This document shows positions 16,866 to 57,788 of a DNA stretch of 64,000 nt, piece by piece. Under the pieces are notes generated by a model. That model did not search any database and was not told where the DNA came from. It saw nothing but the letters and a program-made list of their open reading frames with translations. The first letter of the stretch is position 1. The number at the start of each line of letters is the position of its first letter. The translations under genes and the position numbers were made by a program. Source of the DNA: Selaginella moellendorffii (Eukaryota > Plantae > Lycopodiophyta); assembly GCF_000143415.4 (NCBI RefSeq), contig NW_003314264.1, positions 1,566,733-1,630,732 of the forward strand, written 5' to 3'.

Positions 16866-18058
16866 TTACTCCGTCCTGGCTTCTTCAAACAAATCCAGCA
16901 GCTTCAAAGTCTGGAAGAACCAAGTTCCAAAGTTTGAATCTTTTTTTTCACTCCAAGGCTAGATTTTAGTCTACCTCTGGCACCGAGAGCTGCAAGCGAA
17001 ACTTTGGGCCGTCGTAGTGATGGAGTATGGGCCGAAACGCATCCTCCTCCAGAGCTTTACAGGCCTTTCGCACTCTCGTTCTTACCTGTATGGGATCACG
17101 ATGGGTTTTCCTTTGTAGCTCTTGCAGCTCAAGAACAAGAAAAAGCTTTCTATTCTCCTAGAAAACGAGAGACAAACCTGAGCTGGGAATCTCGACTCTC
17201 CGCGGCACTTCTTGTCCTCCCACGCAGTTGCATCGATGTTGGAGCCTCCAAAACTTGTTGCCTGGATTGGATTGATAGATTCTTTAGAGTTTCAAAGAGG
17301 ACAACGGCAAAGAAGCACTTAAGTGTAATACGTACCTCGTAAATCCCATGAAGCTGATGCGTGGAGTAATTGTATAGAAACAATGGCAGCCCCGGCTGGA
17401 TTGCTCTCACCGAGTCACGGTATCTTTGGGGAAGGCCTGCGAAGTTCTTCTAGGTGAGAAACGAGATAAAGGAAAGAAAAAAATTAAAAAAACAAGAGAA
17501 GAAAAAAAAACTTACGAGCGTTTTATGGCCGAGAGCAAGAGAAAAAATGGAGATGGTGGAGTTTTGTTTCAACGGGATGTAAGGTTTACCGAAGAGTTGG
17601 CGCTTGAGATCTTCTTGCATGGTATCGTTGTTGCACACGAAGATATACCCACCGAGGACCTCGCTCCGGGGAAGCGTCTCGGATGGAGGAAGCGTCTTGA
17701 AGCGTTTGTCCTGACTGTTTTGCGAGCCTTGCTGCTGCTGGATCGAGGCAGCCTCCCCGGTCTTGGCCGACTCCACCGCGCTGCTGCTGCTTTGCTTGTG
17801 GTGATCTTCGTGGCTGCCGCTCGCGTTCTTGGATCTTGCCGATCGCTTGGAACTGGAAGTGGAACCAGAGCTCCTGGTGGCTGCTGCATTGTCCGAAGCG
17901 CCGCTAGCGCTGGTGGGCTGTGGCTGCTGCGACTGATTTGGATGGCTTGGAGGATGGTTTTGCTGGATCGGAGGATTCGGAGGATGGCGATGGTGGTGGT
18001 GGTGATTTTGCTGCTGCGTCACAAATTGCTGGAAGTTCCACTTGCCCTCCTCGTCCAT
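16866..18058 (-). CDS. DCD (development and cell death) domain protein, NRP2/B2-like, 5 exons
   Basis: Exons 18058-17590, 17436-17336, 17261-17178, 17085-16975, 16910-16866 give KRFKTLPPSETLPRSEVLGGYIFVCNNDTMQEDLKRQLFGLPQRYRDSVRAIQPGLPLFLYNYSTHQLHGIYEATSFGGSNIDATAWEDKKCRGESRFPAQV..HHYDGPKFRLQLSVPE. The start codon is inferred. Confidence 0.92.
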
Positions 18059-18314
18059 GCACCAGATCGGGCTCCCCCAAATCGCCAGCGTTGCTATGTG
18101 ATAAACGCTCAACATTTAAGGAGGAAATCTCCCAGCTGATGGCCCCAAGCTTGCTACCACTCGATCGCTTGCAAAGAGCTCGAGCGTAGGAATCACTTGA
18201 GAGACGAAGTCGAGAAAAATCACTCTCCGCGCCACAAACCCTGTTTTAGCCTCTTTTTTATGACCTAATCCCATCGAATAATGGCCCCGCGAATTTCAAC
18301 GGCTGGACGCTGGT

Positions 18315-23922: not shown

Positions 23923-24534
23923 CTTGTTTGGCTTTTGCTTCAACCACTACCATGTGGTCCCCTTTTGGCTCCACTTTAGGGTTTAGGGATTTGTGTCTCA
24001 CATTTGTCCCTTGAAACCCTCAAGCTAGAGATAGAGTTGGCTAGGATCCCCTTATACTTTATTAGTAGATTTAGCCTATAGGTAATATGGTGTGGACCTT
24101 TTGTAAATTCTTGTATAAGAGGGAAAGTGACGAATGGTAAGCTCTCACATATTGGTCTCTGTGGTATAGCAAACATAGAGAAGTGTGTGCCTACCTCAAA
24201 ATTGCAAAATTAGAGGGGGATTGTGCTTGCTTCAAAATCATAGGACATAGACACATACACATAGAGCCCTTAGTTAATCAAATGAGTTCATCTTAGCTAC
24301 TTACACCTTAAACCTTTAGGCTAAGCAAGACATCCAAGCTCAGCCACTCCACAAGAGCCACAACCTAGCCTAGATGTAATATAAGTTTGATACAAGCTTT
24401 GTTTAAATGCAAGATTGATGTTATAGCCAATGGCTCTACACTTCAAACACGACAGCCATGGCATTAACTCAGTGCCATATAATACCTTAGACAACCTACC
24501 ACATCAACTAGAGTGTCCTCTTTGGTTGCCAAAT

Positions 24535-25098
24535 TATAAGGAACTAAAAAGAACAATTCAAGAGACAATTCATTAGAGTTCAAATATAAAGGGAAGGGGC
24601 TTATGAATAAAAAGACACATTTTTTTCCAAGTAGATAAGAGTTTTAGGATATTTAGGGCTAAGTGTCCTTAGGTTTGAATAGTATTGGGTTTCGAGAAGT
24701 TTAAATTTAAAAGCTTACATTTGGTGTTTGAAAGGTCTTGGGTCCGAGGTTAGTTGGTTAGAAGAATCATACCATATGTTGAAATTGACATTTGATAGAT
24801 CCAATTTGCCTCTGGTTGGGCTTAACTCAAGGGGCAGGGTGTCAAGAGAGTGGGGCTCTCAGCTCTCGTTCACAAGGGCATGAACTTGCAAGGATGTGTG
24901 ATGAATTGTAAGTAACCAAAAAGAACAACTTGAAAGACATTTTATTAGGGTTCAAATATAGAGGGAAATGGCCCATAAATAAGAGTGCACCTCTTTTTCC
25001 AATTAGTTAAGTCTTAGGATATTTGGGGTCTATCCTTGGGTTTAAATAGTACTAAGTTGGATGACCTACTGGGAAGTCCAAATTCAAGAGAACTTACA
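24535..25098 (+). mobile_element. Cassandra-like TRIM (non-autonomous LTR retrotransposon with 5S rRNA-derived LTR segment)
   Basis: Two direct LTRs (24535-24719, 24907-25098; T(G/A)TAAG..CTTACA), a non-coding interior of about 187 bp and a perfect 5-bp TSD CAAAT. The 3' LTR has CCTTGGGTTTAAATAGTACTAAGTTGGATGACCTACTGGGAAGTCC, similar to the 5S internal control region. Confidence 0.85.
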
Positions 25099-28000
25099 CA
25101 AATTGGCATTATTAATTTCTTGCCTTTCACATTGTTTATATGACACTAGTTGCCTTTGGCTCAAAACAACTCCCACATACAAGTATCTTGGAGCAATCTC
25201 TTTCCACCAAGAGCTCCCTAAAAACATCCATGAAAGGGGAGAAGGCTGCCACTCATAACTTTGTTGCCATCAGTACCCAACCAATGCCCATCAATGCAAG
25301 CCATCCCATAAAGCTACTCCCCACAACCCAATTCATACTCAACTTTGGCAAAGTTACTAAATGCAAACCACTTTGATGGCACACAATGCCTTTCCTATCA
25401 AAACCACCATATCCACCTTCTTAACCCTTGCCCTAGCAATAACAGCTAACCCTACTTTATATGGATTGCCTACTCACGCAAAGGAGCCACCAATTTAGCA
25501 ATCATGAGGATGAGTGGTAACACTGCATAGTGAGCAGCATGCCCATCCAAACCAATCCTTCCCAAGGTAAGAATTTGAGAGAGTGTTATGGCAATCTCTA
25601 CCCACCAAAAACTCCTTTTATAACAACTTGTGGTCTCACCCATTATGTATGCTCCTCATGACTCTAGTGGATGCTCAGCCTATGGCAATCTGCCACAACC
25701 ACTGCTGCCCCTATTGCCACTGCCAACATTGCCAGGACCTTCGCTACAATGACTAGACATAGCCACCATGCTATGTGCAATAGTAGAAGTAGTGATCTTA
25801 GCAATAGCTACTAGCACCCACATACTCAATGATGAGATTGTTTTAATTGTGACCTAGACAATTGTGCCAACTTGGGGAGCCACATAAGGAATCACCAACT
25901 CAAGTGTAGTAGTGGCCCTACAATAGAGCCATGACCTCCTCACCAGCACAATCACACACTAACCATCTCTAGAGGAGCCACATATGCTACCACCACCCAA
26001 CACCAACATTTGTACCACCCTTTTTTGCAAAGTGAATAACAAATCTAATTGGGAATAGAGGATGATGAGATGACCACCCTCGGCTTTGGGGACATCTTGT
26101 GCTATCCCTTCGGAAAATGGCAAGGCCCATCCCAATGGCAACTCCTTATCTATGTTGACCATGAGAATTTTTAATTTGCCCAAGTGTAGTGCACCCTATC
26201 TCTCTCCACTAAAAAAGGGGCAATTGTTTAATGAGAGAGCCTTTAATAATTATTTTATCTCTATTTATCCCCTAAAATTCCAAGGATCCACAGTGACAGT
26301 ATATCCAAATTTTATCCCATGATTATATACACTACACCAAGCTTTACCATGTTTAGGAAACCTTGTACATGGGTATCAAAACTTCTACCTTTAACTAATG
26401 GAACAACTAGACATTTGCCACATCCCATTCAGCTAAGGGTGCTTCCAATATAAAAACTTTCTTGCATATATATAGAACACCTTAGCTACAGATAAGACAT
26501 GCCTCTACCAGTTCCCCACCTATTGTGCTCTGATACACCTCAATATAATCAGATGGACCAATGTTGCTATATAGGAGATCTTCTACCCAATCAGCAACTC
26601 CATCCATATTGATTGCAAAATATGGCAAGCAATAATTAGAATCAAACAGCCATTAATCTTGGAAGTCCCAATAGGTGAACCTAACTAGCCAATTCCAAAA
26701 TTTCAACATTCCTCAAGTCGAGGACATCACCTATATAATGGTGCAACTTTGGGTCTTCATATGGATGTACCACAATGTTGCCATCCAAATGACCACACCA
26801 CCCCTACTAGCTGGCCAACAGCAATTTATAGCATTAACCAGGAGCTCCCCCCTTTGGCCCAACCTCACGATGAAGAAACATAAGGCTAGCTCCCCACTTA
26901 TGTAGGAGGGCCTTATGGAGACATCACTTCAAGAACTGATAGAGCTAGTTGAGTGTTAGAAGACTAAATAATAATGCCCAAGAACCAGGTAACTACTAGT
27001 GGCTCCTGCCCAGGGCTTCTTGGGGTTGCTTCCACACCCACAAGTGAAGCAATGGCTTCAATTGACACAATAGCCATAAACTTGCCTAATGAAGGCTATG
27101 TAGCAGAATGCAGCTACGAAAGGCCTCTTGGAAGTAAAAACAAGACAAAAGTGGCACCATTGGCCTCAAACAATGAAATTGTTGAGCAACCCCCACCCAA
27201 ACAGTAGTATAAAGCATGTAAGAAGAAGGGTGAAGACTTGGCAACCAACCAGCTGATGCTACTAGAGGACTCTAAGACCTAAAACCCACTACATTGAGCA
27301 TAAGGCTTTATTAAAACTACAAGAATGAGTCCATGGGAATAAACACTAGGAACAACAACCTCAATGAACATTCCCTCAATGAACATTCCCACCACTAGAA
27401 ATGCAAGATACAATTGATGAGATCCAAGCAGAAATCTGGCTAGGACAACCAAATCATATCATGCCCTTCACAAGAATCCCAAATTAGCCACGCTAGGCCC
27501 TTTAACACCAAACCACCCTTTTGGCATCACACAAAGATTTTACCAATGGCCTTGTGAGCACTGTGTTGGCACTTGAATGCATCACTATGCATTTTGATAG
27601 CTGGAAGACCACAAACCCCCATCATCAAGGTGACCCCCATAATTAACCATAAGAATTCATGGGGAACATGAGTAATAACCACTCTTTATCTCCATGCCAT
27701 GGAAGACCAAAGGGCACTACTCATCGAAAAAACATGCTTTCATTTCCCAGATGGAAACATCTAGCAGGTACCTGAATGACAACTCCCTTCTCTCCTCCTT
27801 CTACTCAAAAGTCCCATATAATGGCAATTATAAACACAGCTCTCTATCTATCTATCTAGACTCATATTTAACTCCAAATTACATCTAAATCAGCTCATGA
27901 CTCATGCAATATAAAAGAAATTTAAGTTCAAGGGTGATGGCAGGTTTGGTCAGTCCCACACATGACCCAGTGATGTTGCCGAGCCCCATGCAAACCCTTC

Positions 28001-33853: not shown

Positions 33854-34299
33854 TTGCTAGGCAAGTACTCATTCAAATATGCTTGGAGATTCTAGGATAT
33901 TTTAATAGCTAATAGTTGTTGTTCATTTAGATTAATCTTTCTATTTATAATTTATAATCTTTCCTAAACACTTTCTAGTATATTCTTGTTTATTCTACTA
34001 ATTGAATAATATTAATCTTGACTCATAAATTATAAATATGTTTATAACCATTGATCAATTAAAATACTCAATGAATGATACTAAGTATTGTCTCTCATAT
34101 TTTTTATCCTTCACCATGGTGTGCCAGCTAAGATCCTTTTGCATCCTTTCAGGTACCATCTTTGTTTGGGTTTCATGGACGGCTCCGTTAACCTTGCATC
34201 ACACTCTTTCCTTGCAAAGTTTACCAACCTCCCGAGAAAAGCTTTTCTCTCATTGAGCAAGCATGCTGAGTAGTGGATTCCATCCAGATTTCTCTCCCA

Positions 34300-34560
34300 G
34301 ATCTGTGAGTGGAGCCTCTTCTCTGCTAAGTTGCTGTGTGCCTTGAGCGCCACCATGAAAGTCTGAGCGTTTGGCTGCTGGCTTGCTCATAGCACTCAAG
34401 AGCAAAGGTTGTTCTCAGCATATCCCAGGAAACAATGTTTTGCTACTCCATGCAAAGTCTCAGCGTTTGGAGGCAGGCCAGCTTCTCATTGCATCTGATA
34501 GAAGACGTGCTGTCCCATGATGATCGTGTTCCAGGCAACCAACGTCATGTTTATTTGTCC
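34300..34560 (-). pseudogene. Degenerate PPR remnant (duplicated at about 46230-46490)
   Basis: LVAWNTIIMG, VFYQMQ..GLPPNAET and QPNAQTFMVALKA are PLS-PPR-like pieces. Confidence 0.5.
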
Positions 34561-35144
34561 TCCTGAACACTTCTGATGCTTCCATGAGGCTGCTTGCAAC
34601 GAATTTGAATTTGCGAGGTAGACCAACCTATCCTGTTCTTCGTCCCATCCTGTTGAAAAACCTGTGTTGCAAGCCGCAGTGTAGACTTCGACCATACTTT
34701 CACAATTGCACTTGCTTGAATGATGCTCTTGACTCTGGAGAAACTTATCTGGCCGCTATGCCCTGCACTGCTTCTTCTCATCGAAGTTGAGCTTTGAGCG
34801 CCTGCAAGAACACAGAGCAAAAGTAGTACGTTACCTTTTCTCAAACCTTTCGTCTCAAGAAACTTCTCTGGCCTTTGGAGGTGCACTAACGTCTGCTCCC
34901 CCGTCACTCTAGAGGATAGCTCAGTCAAATCGAAACTTGGCAGTTTCTTGCTCTATTTTCCAGTCCATGTTCCAAGCCACCTGTGCAATAACTTCCAAGT
35001 CTGGTGACTTCCACCAGTTGACCCTTGTATGTGATCTTCACTGTCCGTGAGCAAGAGCCTGCTGTCTTCTTGCTCTGCAACTTCATCTCCTTGAAGATTG
35101 TTTGTACACAATCTTCCATGTGACAACGCATGCACTGTGCTGAC

Positions 35145-35903
35145 TTACGCGTCACTGCCAGTGTTGGCAGGACACTTTGAGGAGAATCCTAGAGTGCCAT
35201 TGCTGTGCGAACCACGAGTGTGAGCTTCCAGCTGTTTCTTCTCAGTCGGAGAATCGTCCACCACAACTTCGATCTGCCACCCGGGATCCTGAAAGATCAC
35301 ATTACTGCGCTGCTTCCTTCGAGATAACATCCATCGCCCGAGCAAAAAGCATGCGAGCAGCACCAAGATCGCAACCAAAACCCAGAGAAGAAGCTGGAGC
35401 AGCGACCACGGCGTCCTCCGAACCACTGTAACTACTGCTGCGGGTGTTGGTGTGGCCACTGCTGCGTCGTGACCGTCACGACGACGACGGTGGTGGTGGT
35501 GGTGGTGGTGGTTGTGGCGTCCTCCATGGTGGTGACCATGGTGATGGTGGTGAACAACCAGAGGAGCTCCATCACCGTGATGATGATGGTACACTGCTGC
35601 TGCTGGAGCTGGATGGTGGTGGCGAGCATGATCGAGGATAGCAGGCGCTGGAGCTAGATGAGCAGGGTGGCCGTGAGCAGGGTGAACGAAAGCAGCTGGC
35701 GCTGGGGCTCGATCTGGAGCGTCACCTTGAAGAACTGGAGCTAAAGCTGGCGCTGGCTCGTGGCCTTGGTGTCCATGGTGGTGTGTTGGATGTGCTGGAG
35801 CTAGAGCTGGAGCTCGCGGGTGTGAAGCTCGGTGATGGCTGCCATGCCATGGCGCTTGAGCTCGGCGGGCAAGCATTGGGGCGGCGTGAGCGCCAGAGAC
35901 CAT
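35145..35903 (-). CDS. His/Pro/Ala-rich (AGP-like) single-pass membrane protein
   Basis: 252-aa ORF with repeated PAPA motifs, poly-His tracts, a hydrophobic helix WSLLQLLLWVLVAILVLLACFLL and a basic RRKQR stop-transfer. The frame is kept in the paralog. 5' structure uncertain. Confidence 0.65.
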   Translation of the reverse strand: MVSGAHAAPMLARRAQAPWHGSHHRASHPRAPALAPAHPTHHHGHQGHEPAPALAPVLQGDAPDRAPAPAAFVHPAHGHPAHLAPAPAILDHARHHHPAPAAAVYHHHHGDGAPLVVHHHHHGHHHGGRHNHHHHHHHRRRRDGHDAAVATPTPAAVVTVVRRTPWSLLQLLLWVLVAILVLLACFLLGRWMLSRRKQRSNVIFQDPGWQIEVVVDDSPTEKKQLEAHTRGSHSNGTLGFSSKCPANTGSDA

Positions 35904-36437
35904 GGCTTACCTGACGAGAGCTTGGACAATAGAAAAATCCAAGCAAGAAAGATTATAACCTAACCCTTGACTTAGAAAAACTTTTGGCTTTGTGAAAAAA
36001 AAAACGAGTACTGGTGACGCTGTGGATTGTCAGCAAGGGTGCCATCGGGCTTGAGCATGCCAAAGAGCCAAAACCTAGATGTGAACAGCGATTTAATCTC
36101 ACAATCACGAAATGCTCTAGGTACAAATATTTCAAAAAGAGAAAACAACTTTAATTTGATGGCAACTCCTTTTTAGGCTCAATCCTAATGTAGTGAACGA
36201 AACTTTTTTACTCACTTTTCAAACCTCTGGAAACTTGGCACTCATTGAATGCAAGTCATGGTGGAGACACAAGCCATCAGCATGCACAAACTACTTCCTT
36301 TTGAAAAAAAGTGGGAAAAAGAAACACAAGATAAATGTCTATCCATTGCTGTTTATAGTGCAACATCCATCCATAGCTCCCTCAACACCAGTAAAATCGG
36401 TCAAAACACCTGGAACAAACCAATAATTGAACATATT

Positions 36438-36510
36438 TGGAGATACTGGGTATCGATCCCGGTGCCTCTCGCATGCTAAGCGAGCGCTCTACCATCTGAG
36501 CTACATCCCC
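36438..36510 (-). tRNA. tRNA-Ala(AGC), possibly decaying
   Basis: GGGGATGTAGCTCAGATGGTAGAGCGCTCGCTTAGCATGCGAGAGGCACCGGGATCGATACCCAGTATCTCCA; C-A mismatch in the T stem and an extra G-T pair in the acceptor stem. Confidence 0.85.
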
Positions 36511-37324
36511 TTAGCAAAGAAAGGGGAATGCTAATCTTTTCTCTTCACCATTCTAATACTCATCCTTGGAGATTCTGGCATCTTTTGTTGCATTTCAAGA
36601 GCCTTTTGAGTGATGAGCTTTGGAAAGACCACTATGTCCAGCAGGTTTCTATAGGCAAGCAGTTGCATCTGCAGGCAACCATAAAGAATGTTACTAATGT
36701 TTATAATAATAATACATAATATAGTAATAGTATTCACAAGAGGAGGACGAAAAGAGTGTTATTCAAGAGGATGAGTAAAGCAATACAATAAACACTAATA
36801 TTATTTGGTATTTTGGTTTGCTAGTAAACATATTTAGGTATAGCTAAAAGTCTTTTAAAATGAGTAACTTTTTTTCCTTACAAAATTTCAAAATCTTTCA
36901 AAGTTTAAATGCATTTTCTTTTGGTGTCTCATAGCCTCTGAACAAACAAATAGAGATATTGGGCACGCTTGATCAATTCAAAGAAACTAATTATTAAAAG
37001 CTTACTAGGTGATGGATTTTGTTTCAAGGTGGCCTCTCTCCATTCCTTGTATTCTAAGCATGTTGTCCTACCTGGATCTTGTATAAAAACCAAACTAATG
37101 CCTTTAAAACTTGTAAGTTGTAACAAGGAAATCAATGCGTTCCTATTGACCTCAAAACTTAATGTACTTCTAAGCATATCTGCTAATAAAGAGAGCCAGC
37201 TCAACAAAAGGAGTCATTAAGAAAATTTTAAAAATATTTTGGTACACTAAAGAATATTTTCGTAATTTTTTAGTGGGAAACATGTATTTTAAACAAAATA
37301 GTAATTGAAATAATATCTAGATCT

Positions 37325-37854
37325 TGTGAGGTCCAAGTGTATGACTACAATGCCGTATACTAATATTAGCGTAGTGGGACCACTCGCTCCTGTATATAAA
37401 TTAGGGTTTTTGGGCTAATTAATATGCATATTTTTTGTATCCCTTTTCATATTCCATACATTCACATTAGTGGAGATATAAGGCACTTTTAATTGTTTTT
37501 GATGAGTGCTTGAATTTGGGATTTTTGGTTTAGATCTAACTTTTGCATCATCTAAATCTAGTTTTTTCCATTTCCTTTCTTTTGTTTTTTCCTTTCAAGA
37601 TTTAATTTTTTGCATTGTCTAGATCTCTCTTTCCTTTTAACCTTTTTTCATCTCTCTTCTTTTTCTCTTTTATTTTCATTCATCTTGATGGTAGATCAGC
37701 AATCTTCTTCTCCTTTGACTCTAAAGTAACAATTGGTACAATTGTTTGATGTTATGCAATTGTAATTGAATAACCAAACTTAATCGATGGTAGCATTCAT
37801 AGCACGTAGTACAACTCCTCTTGTTCTTGGTGCCAATCCTTGCGTTCAGCCGGA
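37325..37854 (+). mobile_element. Decayed family A 5' LTR, leader and gag start, interrupted by family B
   Basis: TGTGAGGTCCAAGTGTA.. LTR, PBS remnant and a decayed MADPQSPPLTLEQQL-like start. Confidence 0.85.
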
Positions 37855-37934
37855 TGTAAGGAACCAACTCCCCGAGGTGTCATAGGCTAAAGGATCCCCA
37901 AAAGCATGACTGAAATGACAAAGAGTTCATCGGA

Positions 37935-38222
37935 TCGGACTGAGTCGAAGATTAAGTCTAAGACTGACAATGAGACTGAGTTCGGGATAGAGTCCAGGAT
38001 CGAGACAGAGTCCGAGATCCGAATTGGATCCAAGACCGAGTCCGAGGTTGAGTCGAAAGTCGAGTCCGAGATCCGAATTGGATCCAAGACCGAGTCCGAG
38101 GTTGAGTCGAAAGTCGAGTCCGAGATCGGGTCTGAGATTGAGTCCGAGATCGAGTCCAAGACCGAGTCCGAAGTCAGGTCCGAGATCGAGTCCAAGATCA
38201 AGTCCGAGATCGAGTCCGAGTA
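37935..38222 (+). repeat. Degenerate 12-bp tandem satellite (GTCCGAGATCGA) inside the family B LTR
   Basis: Visible periodicity; accounts for the low-complexity ESEI/SPRS/DSIS ORFs. Confidence 0.9.
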
Positions 38223-39991
38223 CTAATACGGGTCAAGAGGTGAAAGCCCAAAGCATGCATCTCCCGGGGGGGGGGTTGCAGAGGGTTCCAAAAGTATAGT
38301 AGGGATAGTGAGGTTCAGGAACCAGTCTTGAAGGAACTCTCCAGTGGTGCTTCCAAACTGACTTGAGGTTGAGACTAGGGCCAAAGGGCCTTGGGTGGGA
38401 GTGAGCATGGACTCCAGTGGTGCCGGAGGGGCCACCCAAGGAAGTGCTCAAGAGCAGCTCCCACTCTTGAAAAGGAAACCGACTGCGATGCTCCTGGCTC
38501 ATGTGGAGTGGTGCCCCATTTGAGTACCTTGTGGCTCATTGGTCCTTGCCCTTCCTAGGGGCTTGGGCCTTCTCTTTAGGATAAAAGTGGGGAGAGGTAC
38601 CCATACTGGGCCGTTAAGCCATGGTGTTTCGCCTCGGCATCCCGAAGCAAGTGTTGCACCCAAGGCTTGGGATTTAGAGGGTCCCATGATCAAATCTTGT
38701 TGTACCAAGGGGTGTTAGGAACCTGGAGGCTTGGTGTGCTTGGCTGCTTGTGCCTGTGGGGAGTGTAGCCGAACCTTAAGTCCAATCTAACCCGGGGAGG
38801 GGGATTGGGAGAGATTTGGGAATCCATAGATGGATGGCTAACACTCTATTGCTCGTGCAGTGAGTAGCTGAAACCAAGTAGGACCAAGTAGGAGTTGGTA
38901 CAATAGGTGGGAACTTTAGCGAGGGAACTTAGCAAAAGCCAAGGCTGTGTCAGTTGGATAGACGAGCTAGCTAGCAAATTGGAAAGGAAAAATTTGTGGC
39001 TTACAATTTGGTATCAGAGCCTTTTCCTTAGTTCTAGTGAAAGATAGAGGTGGATTGCTGAGAGATGGCAAAGGCAGGGCAGAAACAAACCAAGGCGGAG
39101 ATAGAACCTCTGCCAAAGCTGGAGCCTTTGGTTGAACAAGAGGCTATGGATGAGGAATCATTGCATGAGGAGGACTCCAATGAGGAAACTTCTAAACAGG
39201 AGTCCGGTGGCGAGGTTCGATCGTTCAAGGCTCGATTGGACGTTCTAGAAGGACAATTGGCACAGACCAATGCCCTGCTGGAGACTCTTGTATGCAAGCT
39301 AAAGCATGATGAGAAGTGGAAGAAAAAGTAATAGACTGCAGATGCTGGTAGCGCAGAAAGTGCGGACCCTTCAGTAGGGATTGAGGCAGAACCAAACAAG
39401 GTTGAACAGACCGAAGTGGAATCAATCCCTCAGGCCATTCCCAAGTACAAACCAAAGCCCCCACCGGTCTTCAAGGGAGTGAACAACTATAAGGTGGTGG
39501 AGGATTGGTTTTAAGATATGGAGGACTACTTTCGAGTGTTGTGGTTACCAAGCTCGGAGAAGGTCTTATATGCAAAACCATACTAATGCCAAGTCTTGGT
39601 GGAGAACGATGGAGGCCAACGAAGGACCGGTTGCCACTTGGGAAATGATGAAGGCGAGGATCTATGCAACATACGTTCCTCTGAATGCTACTTTGCACCT
39701 AAGGGATAAGCTGAGTAGGCTGAAGCAGACCGAAACCATTCAAGAGTATGTGAATGGATTTATGGCAAAGAGGATACTAGTCACATATATGGGTGATATG
39801 GATGCGTTCCATGCCTTCATATCAAGCTTGCAAACCTGGGCTTGCGGCGAGGTGATGCGTTGGAACCCGACCAATTATAAAGAAGCGTTAGATGCGGCTA
39901 TCAAGGTGCATTTTAACGATAACCTGTGAAAGGGGAACACGATGGGGTCAGAGTCCACCTTTAGCAAGGGGCCAAACCAAGGGGAACATAT

Positions 39992-40185
39992 TGTAAGTAA
40001 CCAAAGGGAACGACTCGAGAGACGGTCCATGGGGTTCAAATATAGAGGGAAAGGGCCCATGAATAAGAGTGCACCCCCTTTTCCAATTGATTAAGGGTCT
40101 TGGGATACTTGGGGTTAAGCGTCCTTGGGTTTGAATAGTATTGGGCTAGGTGACCTCCCGGGAAGTCCAAATTCAGGAGTTTACA
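39992..40185 (+). mobile_element. Solo LTR of the Cassandra-like TRIM inserted in family B gag
   Basis: 194 bp, TGTAA..TTACA, TSD CATAT. The empty site is seen in the second B copy near 53070. 5S-like segment at 40114-40168. Confidence 0.9.
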
Positions 40186-43100
40186 CATATAGCAAAGGGA
40201 AATTCAAGAAGAGTTTCTCTCAAAAATGAGTCCTCGAGATTCTGGAAAAGCAGATCCAGTGGCCAGCGACTGAGTACATGGGGGAGTCAAGCAAAAAGAG
40301 ACAAACCCACGGATAAGAAGGTCAAGTCATTTAGCAGTGTGGGAAACAATGTATGCTACAGCTGCGGTGAAGCGGGACACTTTTCAAGGGAATGTCCCTA
40401 CCCGAAGAAGGCCGGGTGAAATCCAAACTGAGGTATGTGATCCAATCCCTAGCTCAAAGTTACTCATTACATGAGCAACTTTGGTAGAGAGTCGTTTGCG
40501 ACATCTACTAGCCCTTCGAGGGAAGCTTGGAGGTAGCTTTGTTAAGATCCTTATTGACACGGGTGCTTTAGATAATTTTATAGCTGTAGACATAGTTCAG
40601 CAAGCCGGACTAACGGTGTAGCGGTTGGGTGAACCAAGGATGATAGAGTTTGTTCAAAGTAGCCAAAGCACCGATGAGATACTTTGACAAGTGAAAGTTA
40701 AAGTAGGGATATGGAAAGTAGACATGGATTTCACTGTGTTGGACATAGTAGGATTTGACCTAATCTTCAAGATGGATTGGTTCAATCGGTTCGTAATGGC
40801 CCTGCATGGACAAGGGAGGAACCTTGTGGTACTGGCGAATGCTCGGGGAAAACGATCCAAGGTGGAGGCTTAGAATCTAAAGGTAGGACAATGTAAGGCC
40901 AAAGACTCCTGCTTAAACATGGTGTCCATGAGAGGACAACTCACTAAAGGAACCAAGGTAGCATTTTTGTGATTACTCTCAGTGAAAAATGACAAAAAGA
41001 CGGGAATGGAAGAAGTACCTTTAGTGATCTAGGGGGTGTTGGACCAATTCCAGGATACCATGCTAGAGGAGCTACCGGCAGGGTTGCCCCCCGCACGACC
41101 GATAGAACATAAAATTGAGCTAGTCGAGGGTGCTGAGGCGGTGGTTCATCCACCCTATTGTTTGAATGTAAAGGAACTCAAGAAGCTCAAGCGCCAACTA
41201 GAGGAGTTGATGGACAAAGGGTATGTTAGGTTGAGCAAGTTGCCATATGGGGCACCAGTGTTATTTGTGAAAAAGAAAAATAGATCTATGCGCATGTGCA
41301 TAGATTACCGATTGCTCAACAAGTATACAAAGAAGAACAAGTACCCTTTGCTAAGGATTGAGGACCTGTTTGATAGGTTGGGAAAATCAAAATACTTCTC
41401 AAGGATTAACCTAAGGTCAGGATACTAGTAAATCAGGGTAGTAGAGGAAGATGTCGAGAAGACAACCTGTCAAATAAGATATGGGAGCTTTGAGTTTCTG
41501 GTGATGTCCTTCGGGCTATGCAATGCATTGGCAACGTTTTTAGCATTGATGAACCACATCTTTGTACTCTATCTAGATCAGTTTGTAGTCGTTTATATTG
41601 ACGACATCCTGATCTATAGCAAAACACTAGAGGAGCATGCCAAACACTTGATGAAGGTGTTTGAGAAACTAAGGGAATACTAGCTGTATGCTAAAGAGGG
41701 AAAATGTGACTTTGCTCAATAAGAGGTAAAATTTCTTGGGCATGTGGTGGGCAAGGATGGGCTCAAGGTGGACCCTGAGAAGGTCCAAGCGATCCAGGAT
41801 TGGGAGCCACCATTGAATGTACACGACTTAAGGGCATTCTTGGGGCTATGCAACTACTATCGAAAGTTTATCAAACACTATTCGAGAGTAACCCTACTCT
41901 TAACGGACCAAACGGGAAAAAAGAAGATGGTATGGACAGTAGAATGTGAGGCTGCATTTGTCCACCTCAAAAGGAAGTTGAAGAAGGCTCCCGTGTTGGC
42001 GTTACCAGACTTTAGTAAGGACTTTGAGGTACAAATGGATGCTTCGGACTTTGCATTGGGTGCAGTTTTGAAGCAAGACAACCATCTAGTAGCGGTCTTC
42101 TCGAAAAAGTTGGAAAAAGCTCAACGAAAGTGGCCTACCCATGAGAAGGAATTGTTTGCGGTGGTCAAAGCACTCAAAGAGTGGCAGCACTACCTTGGGA
42201 GACACTGTGGACACGGACAATGTGGCAACGGACAATGTGGCAACGAAACACTTCTTGTCACAGCCCGATCTGAGAGGGAAACAGGGTCGGTGGGCCAATG
42301 CTTTGGCCGAGTTTGATTGCGAGATTCTGTACAAGCCTGGGAAGAGTAACATCGTGACGGATGCGCTAAGTTGAAAAGCAAGCTTGAAGTTAGCGATATC
42401 TAGCGCGACATCAAGCTTTTGGGATGATGTGCGGACAGCATATGAGAACGATGGTCTAGCACAAGAAGTGTTGCTGAGGAATCTAGAGGCACGGGAAGCT
42501 CACTAAAGAGGTGAGCTGCCAATAGAAGAGAAAATGGGCCATGCGGAATGCAATGGACTCATATATTACAAACAAACGAGGGTGTACATTTCAGAAGGGG
42601 AACTAAGGAAGGTAGCCTTAGAAGAGTGTCATGATGGACCTTTTGCGGGACATGGTGGAGTGCCCAAGACGATGGGCTTACTCAAGAGGAAGTATCACTG
42701 GCCAGATATGGCTAAGGATGTCCAAGACTATGTAAAGACATGCCCAACATGTCAGTAGGTCAAAGCTGTGACTAAGGCGAGTGGGGGCTTGTTACAAAGC
42801 ATCCCAATTCTAGATCATCCGTGGAAATGTCTTACAATGGACTTCATCACGGGACTCCCCCTAAGCGAAGGGTTTGATGCGATATTTGTGGTGGTGGACC
42901 GATTTTCGAAGATGGCACATTTCATACCGACCACAACGGAATTGGATGCGGAAGGTGTGGCAAAGCTATTCTTCGAACAAGTGGTTCGAGTGCGGGGAAG
43001 GCTAGAAGAGATTATCTTAGATCGAGATAAAATCTTCACTAGTAGGTTCTGGAGAACTCTCCTAGAATAGTATTGCACCAAGTTGAAATTCAGCACAGCC

Positions 43101-44975: not shown

Positions 44976-47059
44976 AGGTATTTAAAAATTAGTAATTTAA
45001 GCATCTAATCTTTATGGGTAATAATTGCTATTTGATAGATTTTTTCATTATCACCTAATTTAGAATTTAAATTATTATTTTAATATCTAATAATTAGTAC
45101 TTATACTAAATATTAAACTTATATATCTATATTATGTTTTCATTACATTTTTAGTGTAATTATTAAAAAATTCCCTATATTGTTTTCTCATAGATAAAAT
45201 TTATTTTAATTTTAAATACAATATCAATATCTTTTTTTTCACCTCATATTCAGATGTTATAATGAATCCAGAAATTAAAATTTGGATCCATCCTATGCAA
45301 ATGATAAAATATTCTAGAATTTTAACATTTAAAGAATTATGTTTAATTGCAACTTTGTTGTAAAGCTTTCTATTTACAGTATCACTTCCATAACTGAGAA
45401 TTATATACTCGTGCTGATGGTATTGCTGTTTGATGTTGATCTTTTACTTTTAATTATAATGCTTTTGAGTATGTTGTCTTTGCTTTCTTTGACCAAGTAT
45501 TTGTAATCTCATACATTTGTTGTTTCTTGTCTACTAATATGAAATTAAGAAATATTTAAAGAACTTGAATTGTAATTATAAAGTTTGTATATATGTACAA
45601 GGCATGGTTGAAAGAAGAATATAACATCTAAGCTACAATAAAATCTTGGAGAAAATTAAGTCCCATATATACTAATGAAAAAATTCTATATACTAACATA
45701 AATACGTTTGTGAATAGGCTTATGTAGATTTAAACTCACCAAAAACTATAAATCTATAATTTGTTTGCATAAGCAAACCTGTAGCAGTATTGACTATATT
45801 TAAATATGCTTGGAGATTCTAGGATATTTTAATAGCTAATAGTTGTTGTTCATTTAGATTAATCTTTCTATTTATAATTTATAATCTTTCCTAAACACTT
45901 TCTAGTATATTCTTGTTTATTCTACTAATTGAATAATATTAATCTTGACTCATAAATTATAAATATGTTTATAACCATTGATCAATTAAAATACTCAATG
46001 AATGATACTAAGTATTGTCTCTCATATTTTTTATCCTTCACCATGGTGTGCCAGCTAAGATCCTTTTGCGTCTTTTCAGGTACCATCTTTGTTTGGGTTT
46101 CATGGACGGCTCCGTCAACCTTGCATCACACTCTTTCCTTGCAAAGTTTACCAACCTCCCGAGAAAAGCTTTTCTCTCGTTGAGCAAGCATGCTGAGTAG
46201 TGGATTCCATCCAAATTTCTCTCCCAGATCTGTGAGTGGAGCCTCTTCTCTGCTAAGTCACTGTGTGCCTTGAGCGCCACCATGAAAGTCTGAGCGTTTG
46301 GCTGCTGGCTTGCTCATAGCACTCAAGAGCAAAGGTTGTTCTCAGCATATCCCAGGAAACAATGTTTTGCTACACCATGCAAAGTCTCAGCGTTTGGAGG
46401 CAGGCCAGCTTCTCGTTGCATCTGATAGAAGACGTGCTGTCCCATGATGATCGTGTTCCAGGCAACCAACGTCATGTTTATTTGTCCTCCTGAACACTTC
46501 TGATGCTTCCACGAGGCTGCTTACAACGAATTTGAATTTGCGAGGTAGACCAACCTATCCTGTTCTTCGTCCCATCCTGTTGAACAACCTGTGTTGCAAG
46601 CCGCAGTGTAGACTTCGACCATACTTTCACAATTGCACTTGCTTGAATGATGCTCTTGACTCTGGAGAAACTTATCTGGCCGCTATGCCCTGCACTGCTT
46701 CTTCTCATCGGAGCGCCTGCAAGAACACAGAGCAAAAGTAGTACGTTACCTTTTCTCAAACCTTTCGTCTCAAGAAACTTCTCTGGCCTTTGGAGGTGCA
46801 CTAACGTCTGCTCCCCCGTCACTCTAGAGGATAGCTCAGTCAAATCGAAACTTGGTAGTTTCTTGCTCTATTTTCCAGTCCATGTTCCAAGCCACCTGTG
46901 CAATAACTTCCAAGTCTGGTGACTTCCACCAGTTGACCCTTGTATGTGATCTTCACTGTCCGTGAGCAAGAGCCTGCTGTCTTCTTGCTCTGCAACTTCA
47001 TCTCCTTGAAGATTGTTTGTACACAATCTTCCATGTGACAACGCATGCACTGTGCTGAC

Positions 47060-47797
47060 TTACGCGTCACTGCCAGTGTTGGCAGGACACTTTGAGGAGA
47101 ATCCTAGAGTGCCATTGCTGTGTGAACCACGAGTGTGAGCTTCCAGCTGTTTCTTCTCAGTCGGAGGATCGTCCACCACAACTTCGATCTGCCACCCGGG
47201 ATCCTGAAAGATCACATTACTGCGCTGCTTCCTTCGAGATAACATCCATCGCACGAGCAAAAAGCACGCGAGCAGCACCAAGATCGCAACCAAAACCCAG
47301 AGAAGAAGCTGGAGCAGCGACCACGGCGTCCTCCGAACCACTGTAACTACTGCTGCGGGTGTTGGTGTGGCCACTGCTGCGTCGTGACTGTCGCGACGAC
47401 GGTGGTGGTGGTGGTGGTGGTGGTGGTGGTTGTGGCGTCCTCCATGGTGGTGACCATGGTGATGGTGGTGAACAACCAGAGGAGCTCCATCACTGTGATG
47501 ATGATGGTACACTGCTGCTGCTGGAGCTGGATGGTGGTGGCGAGCATGATCGAGGATAGCAGGCGCTGGAGCTAGGTGAGCAGGGTGGCCGTGAGCAGGG
47601 TGAACGAAAGCAGCTGGCGCTGGGGCTCGATCTTGAAGAACTGGAGCTAAAGCTGGCGCTGGCTCGTGGCCTTGGTGTCCATGGTGGTGTGCTGGATGTG
47701 CTGGAGCTCGTGGGTGTGAAGCTCGGTGATGGCCGCCATGCCAGGGCGCTTGAGCTCGGCGGGCAAGCATTGGGGCGGCGTGAGTGCCAGAGACCAT
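47060..47797 (-). CDS. Paralog of the His/Pro/Ala-rich membrane protein
   Basis: 245-aa ORF; differs from 35145-35903 by in-frame indels and a few substitutions. Confidence 0.65.
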   Translation of the reverse strand: MVSGTHAAPMLARRAQAPWHGGHHRASHPRAPAHPAHHHGHQGHEPAPALAPVLQDRAPAPAAFVHPAHGHPAHLAPAPAILDHARHHHPAPAAAVYHHHHSDGAPLVVHHHHHGHHHGGRHNHHHHHHHHHRRRDSHDAAVATPTPAAVVTVVRRTPWSLLQLLLWVLVAILVLLACFLLVRWMLSRRKQRSNVIFQDPGWQIEVVVDDPPTEKKQLEAHTRGSHSNGTLGFSSKCPANTGSDA

Positions 47798-48860
47798 GGC
47801 TTACCTGACGAGAGCTTCGACAATAAAAAAATCCAAGCAAGAAAGATTATAACCTAACCCTTGACTTAGAAAAACTTTTGGCTTTGTGAAAAAAAAAAAC
47901 GCACTAACATAACCTTAACCTAGTTAAAAACAATTTTAGGTAATTGATATAAAATTACAGTTAAAACCAGATAAAAATGCCATTAAAAACTATCATAGTG
48001 AGGGAAAATTCAAGCTTCCCTCAATAAACTCATAATAAAAAGATATATGTATGATCAAAATACATAAAATCAAGGAGTTAGGATGTCATCTGATATATTT
48101 ATCTACCTCTAATTTACCTCTAGAAATGTGATATCTAAGAATAAAAAATTAAAAAAAAACAAGGGAAACACCAAGTTTTAAATATAAGTTTCAATGTGGC
48201 TTTTAACTTCAATGTAGAAGATCATATTGACTAGTGTATAACATCAATTCTCTAAGAACCAAAAATATAAAACATAACGAAAACTATATAATTTTAATGT
48301 ATCTAGATTATTTAGATCTACAATCATTGCATTTATAAATCTTTTCAAGATGTAGTCATTCACACAATATCCTTTATAAGAATTCTATCTTTATACTTAT
48401 TCGGTTTAAGTACACTAGAGATAGTAAACTCGAGAGCTAGTGACGCTGTGGATTGTCAGCAAGGGTGCCATCGGGCTTGAGCATGCCAAAGAGCCAAAAC
48501 CTAGATGTGAACAGCGATTTAATCTCACAATCACGAAATGCTCTAGGTACAAATATTTCAAAAAGAGAAAACAACTTTAATTTGATGGCAACTCCTTTTT
48601 AGGCTCAATCCTAATGTAGTGAACAAAACTTTTTTACTCGCTTTTCAAACCTCTGGAAACTTGGCACTCATTGAATGCAAGTCATGGTGGAGACACAAGC
48701 CATCAGCGTGCACAAACTACTTCCTTTTGAAAAAAAGTGGGAAAAAGAAACACAAGATAAATGTCTATCCATTGCTGTTAACTGTGCAACATCCATCCAT
48801 AGCTCCCTCAACACCAGTAAAATCGGTCAAAACAGGAATGAACCAATAATCAAACATATT

Positions 48861-48933
48861 TGGAGATACTGGGTATTGATCCCGGTGCCTCTCGCATGCT
48901 AAGCGAGTGCTCTACCATCTGAGCTACATCCCC
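48861..48933 (-). pseudogene. tRNA-Ala(AGC) duplicate, likely pseudogene
   Basis: As 36438-36510 plus two further G>A changes, one in the T loop/B box (GATCAATA). Confidence 0.7.
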
Positions 48934-49790
48934 TTAGCAAAGAAAGGGGAATGCTAATCTTTTCTCTTTACCATTCTAATACTCATCCTTGGAGATTCTG
49001 GCATCTTTTGTTGCATTTCAAGAGCCTTTTGAGTGATGAGCTTTGGAAAGACCACCATGTCCAGCAGGTTTCTATAGGCAAGCAGCTGCATCTGCAGGCA
49101 ACCATAAAGAATGTTACTAATGTTTATAATAATAATACATAATATAGTAATAGTTTTCACAAGAGGAGGACGAAAAGAGAGTGTTATTCAAGAGGATGAG
49201 TAAAGCAATACAAATCAATTGGTTAAACACTAATATTATTTGGTATTTTGGTTTGCTAGTAAACATATTTAGCTACATAATTGTATAGCTAAAAGTTTTT
49301 TAAAATGAGTAACTTTTTTTTCTTACAAAATTTCAAAATTGGAAACGTCACCTTTACATTCTTTCAAAGTTTAAATGCATTTGCTTTTGGTGTCTCATAG
49401 CCTCTGAACAAACAAATAGAGATATTGGGCACGCTTGATCAATTCAAAGAAACTATATATTAAAAGCTTACTAGGTGATGGATTTTGATTCAAGGTGGCC
49501 TCTCTCCATTCCTTGTATTCTAAGCATGTTGTCCTACCTGGATCTTGTATAAAAACCAAACTAATGCCTTTAAAACTTGTAAGTTGTAACAAGGAAATCA
49601 ATGCCTTCCTATTGACCTCAAAACTTAATGTACTTCTAAGCATGTCTGCTAATAAAGAGAGCCAGCTCAACAAAAGAAGTCATTGAGAAAATTTTAAAAA
49701 TATTTTGGTACGCTAAAGAATATTTTCGTAATGTTTTAGTGGCAAACATGTATTTTAAACAAAATAGTAATTTAAATAATATCTAGATCT

Positions 49791-50520
49791 TGTGAGGTCC
49801 AAGTGTACGACTACAATGCCGTATACTAATATTAGTGTAATGGGACCACTCGCTCCTATATATAAATTAGGGTTTTTGGGTTAATTAATATGCATATTTT
49901 CTATATCCCTTTCCATATTCCACACATTCACATTGGTGGAGATATAAGGCACTTTTAATTATTTTTGAAAAGTGCTTGAATTTGGGATTTTGGTCTAAAT
50001 GTAACTTTTACATTATCCAAATCTAGCTTTTTTCATTTCCTTTCTTTTGTTTTTTCTTTTCAAGATTTAGTTTTTTGCATTGTCTAGATCTCCCTTTCCT
50101 TTTAGCCTTTTTTCATCTCTCTTCTTTTTCTCTTTTCTTTTCATTCATCTTGATGGCAGATCAGCAATCTCTTCCTCCTTTGACTCTAGAGTAGCAATTG
50201 GTACAATTGCTTGATGCTATGTGATTGTAATTGAACAACCAAACTTATAGCACGTAGTACAACTCCTCCTGTTCTTGGTGCCAATCCTTGCATTTAGCCG
50301 GAGTTCTTTCACGGGAATCCTAGGGATGATGTGTACTATTGATTTGATCACTTCACGGTGATTGCCATATATCATTCTTGGGATAATGCTTCACGTTTGC
50401 GTGAGTTTCCCACATATCTTCAAGGGACGGCATTAGAATGGTACAATGGTTTAAGCACAGCCACTTGTAGGGATTGGAGTGTTCTTTTGGACGTCTTTAA
50501 ACATGGATTTGGACATGTTG
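49791..50520 (+). mobile_element. Decayed family A 5' LTR and gag
   Basis: IAIYHSWDNASRLREFPTYLQGTALEWYNGLS matches the intact gag. Confidence 0.9.
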
Positions 50521-56353: not shown

Positions 56354-56816
56354 ATCTAAAATTTTAGAGGTTTTTATTTCTGACCTAATTTAAATAATAA
56401 ATTCACTATGTGAGGGCCAAGTGTACGGCTACGATACCGTATACTAATATTAGCGTAGTGGATTTTGGTAGCCGTCGGATTGGTTTCAATCCGGACCACT
56501 CGCTCCTGTATATAAGCTAGGGTTTTTGGGCTAATTGATATGCACATTTCTGTATTCCCTTTCCATATTCCATGCACTCACATTGGTGGAGGTGATGGGC
56601 ACCTTTGATTGTCCCTGGGGAGTGCTTGGATTTGGAGATTTTGGTTTAGATCTAGCTTTTCCATTGTCTAGATCTAGCTTTTTCCATTTCCTTTCTTTTG
56701 TTCTTTCCTTTCAGGATTTTGGTTTAGATCTAGCTTTTTGCATTGTCTAGATCTACCATTTCTTTCCAGCTTTTTGTCATTTCTCTTCTTTTGCTCTTTC
56801 TTTCTCATTCATTTTC

Positions 56817-57749
56817 ATGGCCGATCCGCAATCTCCTCCTTTGACTCTAGAGCAGCAGTTGGTTCAATTGCTTGATGCTATGCGCCTGCAATTGAACAAC
56901 CAAACTCAGTTGATGGCGGCGTTCACGGCACATGGTACAACTCCTCCTGCTTTTGGTGCCAATCCTCGCGTTCGGCCGGAGTTCTTTCGTGGGAATCCTG
57001 GGGATGATGTGTACCATTGGTTCGATCACTTCACGGTGATTGCCACATATAATTCTTGGGATGATGCTCGACGTTTGCGGGAGTTCCCCACATGTCTTCA
57101 AGGGACGGCATTGCAGTGGTACAATGGATTGAGCGCAGCTACTCGTGGCGATTGGAGTGTTCTTCCGGACGTCTTCAAACGCGCCTTTGGACACGCCGAC
57201 GATTGTGATGATGCCTTCCAACAATTGCATCGTCTTCGCCAAGGGCTATCTGAGTCGGTGATGCAATTTGGCGTTCGTTTCCGAAGTCTTTTGCTTCGTG
57301 TGGAGCCAAATATGTTGGAGCGGATCAAGCTAGGAATGCTGTGGCCAACACTTCGTCAAGATCTTGTCGGACTTGTGCATGCACTTGCTCCTGCCACTCT
57401 TGACGATGCTCTTCGCTTGGCACAACGTTATGAGACGTCGCCTCTTCCACTTCTTGCTACACGTCCTTCAGCTCCACTTCCTATGAGTGATGGTCCTGTT
57501 CCCATGGAGGTTGATGCTGCTGCTACTCGAGTCCAAGGACAAGGGCGAGGACGTGGTCGTGGCCGTGACATTCGTTGCTGGGCGTGTGATGAAGTTGGTC
57601 ATACTTATCGGCGTTGTCGGCGCTTTCCAGATTGGCGACCTCCATTTCCTGGGTGGAGACCTTGGCGTCAGCAACGTCCCGTTGGTGCTGCTGCGGTGGA
57701 AGGTTTGGATACCGAGGTGCATTTGGGAAACGAGGAGTCGCGCGAGTAA
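56817..57749 (+). CDS. gag: Gag with CCHC zinc knuckle
   Basis: 310-aa ORF; LQGTALQWY, LRQGLSESVMQF, PVPMEVD, CWACDEVGHTYRRC. Confidence 0.95.
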   Translation: MADPQSPPLTLEQQLVQLLDAMRLQLNNQTQLMAAFTAHGTTPPAFGANPRVRPEFFRGNPGDDVYHWFDHFTVIATYNSWDDARRLREFPTCLQGTALQWYNGLSAATRGDWSVLPDVFKRAFGHADDCDDAFQQLHRLRQGLSESVMQFGVRFRSLLLRVEPNMLERIKLGMLWPTLRQDLVGLVHALAPATLDDALRLAQRYETSPLPLLATRPSAPLPMSDGPVPMEVDAAATRVQGQGRGRGRGRDIRCWACDEVGHTYRRCRRFPDWRPPFPGWRPWRQQRPVGAAAVEGLDTEVHLGNEESRE

Positions 57750-57788
57750 TGGAGGGACCTTGTGCGAATAAGTTAGTGACCCCTCCAT
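57725..57788 (+). promoter_or_regulatory. -1 programmed ribosomal frameshift signal (G GGA AAC plus H-type pseudoknot)
   Basis: In-phase heptamer 57725-57731, 6-nt spacer, stem 1 57738-57746/57759-57767, stem 2 57749-57756/57781-57788. Confidence 0.85.

Follow-up and report, generated by a model that had tools for sequence, protein, structure and literature searches.

The DNA analysed here, a stretch of 64 kb (the window), corresponds to GL377568.1:1566733-1630732 of the Selaginella moellendorffii assembly GCA_000143415.2. The locus L003 (GL377568.1:1573598-1594790) and window positions 6866-28058 are 100% identical over 21,193 bases, which turns the probable lycophyte host of the original prediction, made from the sequence alone, into a definite one. 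At positions 24535-25098 (GL377568.1:1591267-1591830 on the scaffold) the window harbors a 564-bp element built of two LTRs and a short interior. The 5' LTR occupies 24535-24719 on the plus strand (185 bp; alignments, nhmmer E = 8e-51), the interior 24720-24906 (187 bp, plus strand) and the 3' LTR 24907-25098 (192 bp, plus strand; TGTAAG...CTTACA by alignments). The borders of the LTRs follow from alignment of the arms; the repeat search gave two direct repeats (24532-24639 with 24904-25011 and 24640-24658 with 25010-25028), which are collinear and spaced by 370-372 bp. The element is flanked by a target-site duplication, CAAAT, read on the plus strand at 24530-24534 (left copy) and, identically, at 25099-25103 (right copy). 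The repeats and alignments show that the dimensions predicted for it (564 bp with LTRs of about 190 bp and a 187-bp interior) were exact, and the perfect CAAAT duplication is present where it was expected.

The 5' LTR finishes with CTTACA and starts with TATAAG, its initial TG having been changed to TA by a G>A change. Ends of the TG...CA type are found in three of the four LTRs of the family described below, and the TA...CA type in this decayed 5' LTR. The interior is non-coding by sequence reading and ORF scan. No ORF longer than 51 aa exists within 24535-25098, and the longest one has exactly this length, in line with the non-coding character proposed earlier. A PBS-like sequence, TGGTGTTTGAAA, is located at 24722-24733, 2 nt past the 5' LTR. 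It agrees with the initiator-Met PBS TGGTATCAGAGC at 7 of 12 positions, so that the description of the PBS as decayed is fair; G>A or C>T, the types that dominate the decay of the element, explain just two of the five mismatches. By analogy with Cassandra, the family may be primed by initiator-Met tRNA, the agreement being 7/12 in the sole complete copy read. At the other end of the interior a weak purine-rich PPT-like sequence, AAGGATGTGTGAT, lies at 24890-24902, 4 nt ahead of the 3' LTR, and the final 35 nt of the interior are 66% purine. The interior (24720-24906) contains no run of four or more T.

The window around the element carries a host gene and several mobile or duplicated segments. 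A gene for a DCD-domain 'B2 protein' (XP_002963637.2) lies on the minus strand at 16870-18115; its exon 1 (17453-18115, minus strand), rich in Gln, His and Ser, is identical to XP_002963637.2 at 158 of 159 positions. A segment of ~4 kb occurs twice, at 33871-37854 and 45798-50302, with 93-97% identity. Each copy of it includes a tRNA-Ala(AGC) gene (36438-36510 and 48861-48933), a PPR pseudogene fragment and a His/Pro-rich ORF of 245-252 aa with one membrane helix, and each adjoins one copy of a gypsy family (see below) in opposite relative orientation. The 252-aa His-rich ORF has no database record. For the PPR pseudogene fragment, the ten matches of highest identity among the 150 listed all come from lycophytes, S. 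moellendorffii contributing seven and Diphasiastrum three. The tRNA-Ala was considered as a primer of the TRIM and rejected, as the PBS-like site is mismatched to the tRNA-Ala of the window. A compact, young-looking gypsy element of ~5 kb lies at 56408-61416; its 175-bp LTRs share 98.9% identity, and it has a gag ORF (56817-57749) as well as an intact pol ORF of 1198 aa (57614-61210). Its nearest protein in the searched collection shows 48% identity; no close Selaginella proteins were found for the 1198-aa pol ORF or for a 190-aa RNase H ORF.

The LTR of the 564-bp element belongs to a family. An nhmmer profile of the LTR detects the LTR copies with E of ~1e-51 to 1e-65, i.e. the repeat is far above chance, and in the window it gives no match beyond the two LTRs of the element and positions 39992-40185. 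The latter is a solo LTR of 194 bp on the plus strand with TG...CA ends (BLAST, nhmmer and Rfam 5S), flanked by CATAT at 39987-39991 and 40186-40190, so that with its duplications it spans 39987-40190. It interrupts the gag of a gypsy element, and the minus-strand copy of this gag, 86-90% identical, is uninterrupted at the corresponding point: the empty site at 53065-53080 (minus strand; BLAST joins 53069/53074, alignment) holds CATAT once. Sampling was extended to five independent loci of the same genome, 115 kb in total, reached via PPR proteins. One of the five, L006, contains a family LTR (L006:17302-17496, GL377620.1) with a GTGAG duplication on both sides; the gene-dense loci L001, L002, L004 and L005 contain no copy. 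In L008 (GL377616.1), a sister segment with an identical order of genes, the solo LTR of L006 is missing and the site shows a single GTAAG.

The three insertions are accordingly marked by perfect 5-bp duplications (CAAAT, CATAT and GTGAG), two of them with a matching empty site. As each of the two solo LTRs has both its own perfect duplication and its own empty site, the family has transposed. Spread of the LTR copies via segmental duplication was also considered and is made unlikely by the duplications at the three insertions together with the two empty sites. In the window and the loci sampled, the search for further copies with target-site duplications that had been proposed from the sequence added the two solo LTRs with perfect 5-bp duplications; no second copy of the interior exists in the window or in six other loci. 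All comparisons within the family therefore concern four LTRs, two in the element and two solo. Two metagenome scans for LTR patterns gave no match. As to the segments that differ in the presence of the solo LTR (L006:17302-17496 versus L008:17419-17440), they are 84-88% identical between genes. The divergence usually quoted between the two haplotypes of S. moellendorffii is ~2%, and the divergence between L006 and L008 (GL377620.1 and GL377616.1) is far above this figure.

The 3' half of the LTR contains a block of 5S rRNA origin. Rfam 5S_rRNA is the top match in three of the four family LTRs, namely the solo LTR 39992-40185 (29.4 bits, E = 7e-4), the L006 solo LTR (26.6 bits, E = 4e-3) and the 3' LTR of the element (17.2 bits, E = 1.4), where it is the sole RNA-gene family found; the 5' LTR (24535-24719) has no Rfam 5S match. 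The scores are higher in the less decayed members of the family than in the 3' LTR. All three are lower than the curated threshold of 38 bits, as is expected because the 5S block is a fragment. In the Infernal check suggested by the original prediction, 5S is thus the best family in three of four LTRs, with every score below the curated threshold.

Further evidence comes from the published search pattern for Cassandra, which consists of box A RGTTAAGYRHGY, a spacer of 15-25 nt (18 in practice), box C RRRATRGGTRACY and the PBS TGGTATCAGAGC (Kalendar et al. 2020, PMC7215508). The two-box pattern RGTTAAGYRHGY-N18-RRRATRGGTRACY fits the two solo LTRs at one and the same LTR position, each time with 2 mismatches and a spacing of exactly 18 nt between box A and box C; its chance expectation is 0.01 per 64-kb window and 0.00 per locus. 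With the pattern fitting the solo LTRs and 5S as top Rfam match in three of four LTRs, the resemblance to 5S noted at the outset is real. The best-preserved block belongs to the solo LTR 39992-40185, where box A (40113-40124) is followed by the 18-nt spacer and box C (40143-40155). In the element itself each LTR has one box lost or damaged. The 5' LTR retains a box-A-like GGCTAAGTGTCC at 24657-24668, and LTR alignments reveal a 10-bp deletion between 24691 and 24692 exactly covering box C, just as the earlier reading had it. The 5S-like block of the 3' LTR (25011-25093) has box C AAGTTGGATGACC at 25054-25066 and a remnant of box A with a 3-bp deletion at ~25026-25035. Box C of the family reads GRGCTAGGTGAC, versus AGGATGGGTG in the canonical form.

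The extent of the block was delimited by fitting alignment of 5S gene oligonucleotides published by Kalendar et al. 2020. Oligo 82-103 matches LTR positions 149-175 with 18/22, 15/22 and 18/22 identities (0-3 of 300 shuffles equal); on the 3' LTR the match is 18/22 with none of 300 shuffles equal, and in the 5' LTR there is no match. Oligo 97-116 matches the LTR through GGGAAGTCC only, and oligo 3-22 has no match in the family LTRs. For the latter reason the Rfam alignment was rejected where it places the 5' end of 5S on LTR positions 104-121. The recognisable 5S piece comprises ~57 nt (gene positions ~50-106), i.e. the internal control region and slightly more. By the Rfam match the block of the solo LTR covers LTR positions 104-191 of 194 (54-98%); the recognisable 5S sequence fills the final 40% of the LTR, where box A is found at position 122 and box C at 152, the LTR itself ending at 194.

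Other features of the LTR are as follows. LTR positions 48-54 hold a conserved TATA-like AAATATA. Each LTR has a single T-run (T4-T9, positions 88-95) located ~12 nt upstream of the 5S-like block, and none after the block; it is T7 in the 5' LTR (24620-24626), T5 in the 3' LTR (24994-24998) and T4 in the solo LTR 39992-40185 (40079-40082). Folding of the 5S-like block against shuffled sequences gave no signal (z = +0.93), and the whole element behaved similarly (z = +0.52), with no sign of the conserved Cassandra 'super-hairpin'; this result has little weight because the LTRs of this copy are 23% diverged. The tail of the LTR (positions 166-189, e.g. 40157-40180), GGAAGTCCAAATTCAGGAG, resembles the box-A region of the Silene Cassandra oligo AGAACTCCAAAGTTAAGCG in 15-16 of 22-24 columns (5-33 of 300 shuffles equal). 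Judging by this resemblance, the tail may be what is left of another partial 5S unit.

Taken as a whole, the element at 24535-25098 is very probably an old inactive TRIM copy, in which the 3' half of the LTR derives from a 5S rRNA gene and holds its internal Pol III control region, made up of box A, the intermediate element and box C. Its two LTRs are 77% identical over 180 aligned positions (K2P distance 0.29) and differ by 34 transitions and 7 transversions. Decay was polarised against the solo LTR 39992-40185 as the reference: of the 46 changes that the 5' LTR shows, 37 are G>A or C>T, and so are 24 of the 32 found in the 3' LTR. These two types occur in similar numbers on both strands, and GC content, 47% in the solo LTR, is down to 35% and 30% in the LTRs of the element. 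Such a pattern, as is typical of silenced and methylated DNA, indicates deamination of methylated cytosines after insertion rather than editing during reverse transcription, and the sequences point to heavy decay of the TRIM family through methylation. Across the family copies the transition bias is extreme (25:1 to 34:7), and GC content ranges from 47% to 30%. Rates commonly used for dating of plant LTRs, 0.7-1.3e-8 per site per year and not calibrated for Selaginella, give the insertion an age in the order of 10-20 million years, probably an overestimate in view of the hypermutable sites. As one promoter box is lost from each LTR, the copy cannot be active. Together with the degraded PBS, the loss of box C (5' LTR) and the damage to box A (3' LTR) make it a dead fossil.

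For intact copies, a scheme can be proposed by analogy with Cassandra. They would be transcribed by Pol III from the LTR, with TFIIIA and TFIIIC acting on the boxes (PMC10886601, PMC7215508). The RNA would then be reverse-transcribed from a tRNA primer annealed just past the 5' LTR, and the DNA copy would be integrated in trans by the integrase of an autonomous gypsy element, giving rise to the 5-bp duplications. The position of the T-runs is not easily reconciled with this scheme: a transcript started from the block of the 5' LTR would stop at the T-run of the 3' LTR and would lack a terminal repeat, and a start ~50 nt upstream of box A would precede the T-run at LTR positions 88-95.

A possible source of the integrase is found in the same window. 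A gypsy family is represented by two decayed copies, at 37855-42586 on the plus strand and 54945-50667 on the minus strand. The 5' LTR of the former (37855-39005, 1151 bp), which is the element that received the solo LTR 39992-40185, starts with TGTAAGGAACCAA and the TRIM with TGTAAGTAACCAA, the first 13 bases being common; the gypsy LTR ends with GGCTTACA and the TRIM with AGCTTACA, the last 8 bases being common. According to shuffle tests, likeness of the tips to this degree has a probability of ~3-4% per end. The gypsy LTR is followed by ATT and then by an exact initiator-Met PBS, TGGTATCAGAGC, at 39009-39020. The likeness is suggestive only, and on its basis the family of 37855-42586 may be regarded as a candidate autonomous helper of the TRIM.

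Cassandra elements are defined by a 5S-related stretch in the LTR (Maiwald et al. 2024, PMC10853983). The 81 reference elements of that work range from ferns to Asteraceae, without a lycophyte; they measure 563-968 bp in total (Table S2A), with an LTR-LTR identity of at least 74%. The Selaginella element, at 564 bp, falls within this size range, and its LTR identity of 77% is just above the bound, which again indicates an old copy. In the comparison with published Cassandra sets advised by the original prediction, the search pattern matches members of the family, and no lycophyte is present in the set of 81.

The Cassandras of ferns are close in structure. Those of Nephrolepis exaltata (AY860313), Didymochlaena (AY860311) and Sphaeropteris (AY860310) measure ~565-606 bp, their LTRs of ~187-208 bp enclosing ~190 bp of interior, and the Selaginella element is alike; the Nephrolepis element has a length of 565 bp, LTRs of 187/187 bp, an interior of 191 bp, the PBS TGGTATCAAAGC and the PPT AAGGGGGCGAT (Maiwald et al. 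2024, Table S2A). Common to the fern and Selaginella elements are also the non-coding character, the presence of 5S boxes A and C in each LTR and the 5-bp target duplication. The PPT-like AAGGATGTGTGAT weakly resembles the fern AAGGGGGCGAT. In fern Cassandras 8 nt separate the 5S sequence from the PBS (PMC7215508); likewise, the Rfam 5S match in Selaginella stops 3 nt short of the LTR end, 2 nt beyond which the PBS-like site begins. What sets the Selaginella family apart from fern Cassandra is its lycophyte host, the PBS with 7/12 agreement in the 24535-25098 copy and the box C GRGCTAGGTGAC. The direct sequence comparison with ferns covered two Nephrolepis primers, 51 nt. The 26-nt LTR primer 68-93 fits each of the four LTRs, 19-20 of 27-28 columns being identical, at LTR positions 101-128 (109-132 in the 3' LTR), 5' of box A and into it; 1, 6, 12 and 36 of 300 shuffles were equal across the four LTRs. 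The primer 43-69 does not fit any of the four. The genuine 5S sequence 5' of box A in Silene Cassandra does not fit at that place of the LTR.

Angiosperm Cassandras (barley, pear, sugar beet, Asteraceae) share with the Selaginella family the 5S-derived promoter, the 18-nt spacing, the TG...CA ends, the 5-bp duplication and the occurrence of solo LTRs. They are mostly larger (563-968 bp, with LTRs of 234-439 bp). In these plants the 5S block is found at 25-75% of the LTR length and never at an LTR end, whereas the Selaginella block lies at 54-98%. They also keep the 5S sequence AGAACTCC.AAG 5' of box A, which is absent in the Selaginella LTRs.

Several other systems deserve comparison. Ajax, a TRIMp3 (Kojima 2024), retains in its LTR, as does the Selaginella family, no more of 5S than the promoter part, and is known only from nemerteans. 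Helenus, also a TRIMp3, carries in its LTRs a tRNA with a Pol III promoter and not 5S; Helenus-1_SMo of S. moellendorffii, with an LTR of 120 bp and an interior of 85 bp, is much smaller than the TRIM described here. In an account drawn from Repbase, Cassandra is traced back to the ancestor of ferns and angiosperms, and S. moellendorffii appears only with the tRNA-bearing Helenus (Kojima 2024, PMC10886601). Among the TRIM subfamilies of the same genome, SmoRetroS1-8, none was called Cassandra, and other TRIM families were reported to have no 5S (Gao et al. 2016). SmoRetroS4 (393 bp, LTR 104 bp; Gao et al. 2016) is excluded as the 5S TRIM family by its size. The Selaginella 5S TRIM family may be another SmoRetroS subfamily under a different name. 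No report of Cassandra in a lycophyte was found in the literature searched by full text, a scope outside which Repbase itself and the 2008 PNAS paper lie.

The resemblance to 5S might in principle be a chance match in an ordinary TRIM driven by Pol II. The sub-threshold values of all Rfam scores, the lack of a stable fold of the 5S block and the conserved TATA-like AAATATA at LTR positions 48-54 are in accord with that. This explanation is nevertheless extremely improbable and close to refuted: the two-box pattern, expected 0.01 times per 64 kb, is found in both solo LTRs at the same position, the match of the 5S oligo at 18/22 is equalled in none of 300 shuffles, and 5S is the best Rfam family in three independent copies. 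The remaining question is whether the 5S sequence was captured once or repeatedly. For Cassandra a single origin 'in early vascular plants' versus several origins is explicitly debated (PMC10853983). The Selaginella family may belong to the true Cassandra lineage and go back, with the fern and angiosperm Cassandras, to the same 5S capture before the split of lycophytes and euphyllophytes, a reading to which we assign almost an even chance. Its dimensions are almost equal to those of fern Cassandras, its 5S block adjoins the 3' end of the LTR with the PBS a few nt on, as in ferns, the box A-box C spacing is exactly 18 nt, and the PPT-like AAGGATGTGTGAT is similar to the fern AAGGGGGCGAT. Furthermore, the Nephrolepis 68-93 sequence fits collinearly in all four LTRs while its Silene equivalent does not. 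On the other hand, the fern match comes from 51 nt and is partly box A itself, the fern oligo 43-69 has no match, the PBS-like site of the 24535-25098 copy agrees with the initiator-Met PBS at only 7/12 positions, the likeness in size could stem from a length limit of Pol III, and in angiosperm Cassandras the block is never at the LTR end.

The same evidence can be read differently if a TRIM of Selaginella, perhaps a derivative of the local gypsy family, acquired a 5S fragment or a 5S-derived SINE of its own and became, like Ajax, a convergent TRIMp3. TRIMs of this kind are documented to have arisen independently (PMC10886601), and for Cassandra itself more than one origin is under open discussion (PMC10853983). 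An independent capture is also favored by the resemblance of the LTR tips to the gypsy family of the same window, by the position of the 5S block at the LTR end and its length, shorter than the ~120 bp of many Cassandras, and by box C being GRGCTAGGTGAC and not the canonical AGGATGGGTG. It is harder to reconcile with the fern-like architecture and the collinear fern match, and we consider it a serious possibility, though one with somewhat less than an even chance of being correct. The fern-like dimensions and the weak fern-specific match suggest, but do not show, shared ancestry. The narrower proposal, that the Selaginella family and fern Cassandra are homologous and descend from one ancient capture with the same truncated end block, size and primer site, is put forward tentatively, the odds being slightly against it.

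To our knowledge, Cassandra is the sole experimentally validated lineage of LTR retrotransposons driven by a captured Pol III promoter. The data support the conclusion that a 5S-bearing TRIM family of Cassandra type is present in S. moellendorffii, which extends the known host range to lycophytes. The copy at 24535-25098 itself contributes no more than a fossil, and it is the family that is of value. A 5S TRIM of a lycophyte with a compact, fully sequenced genome makes the question of origin testable by sequence comparison with ferns and with the 5S of the host. In addition, the same genome may hold the long-sought autonomous helper, a candidate for which is the gypsy element with matching LTR tips and PBS located 13 kb away. 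If the homology with fern Cassandra is true, Cassandra would be more than 400 million years old, predating the split of lycophytes and euphyllophytes, and the single-origin question of Maiwald et al. 2024 would be settled. Cassandra would then be one of the oldest continuously propagating lineages of non-autonomous retrotransposons known.
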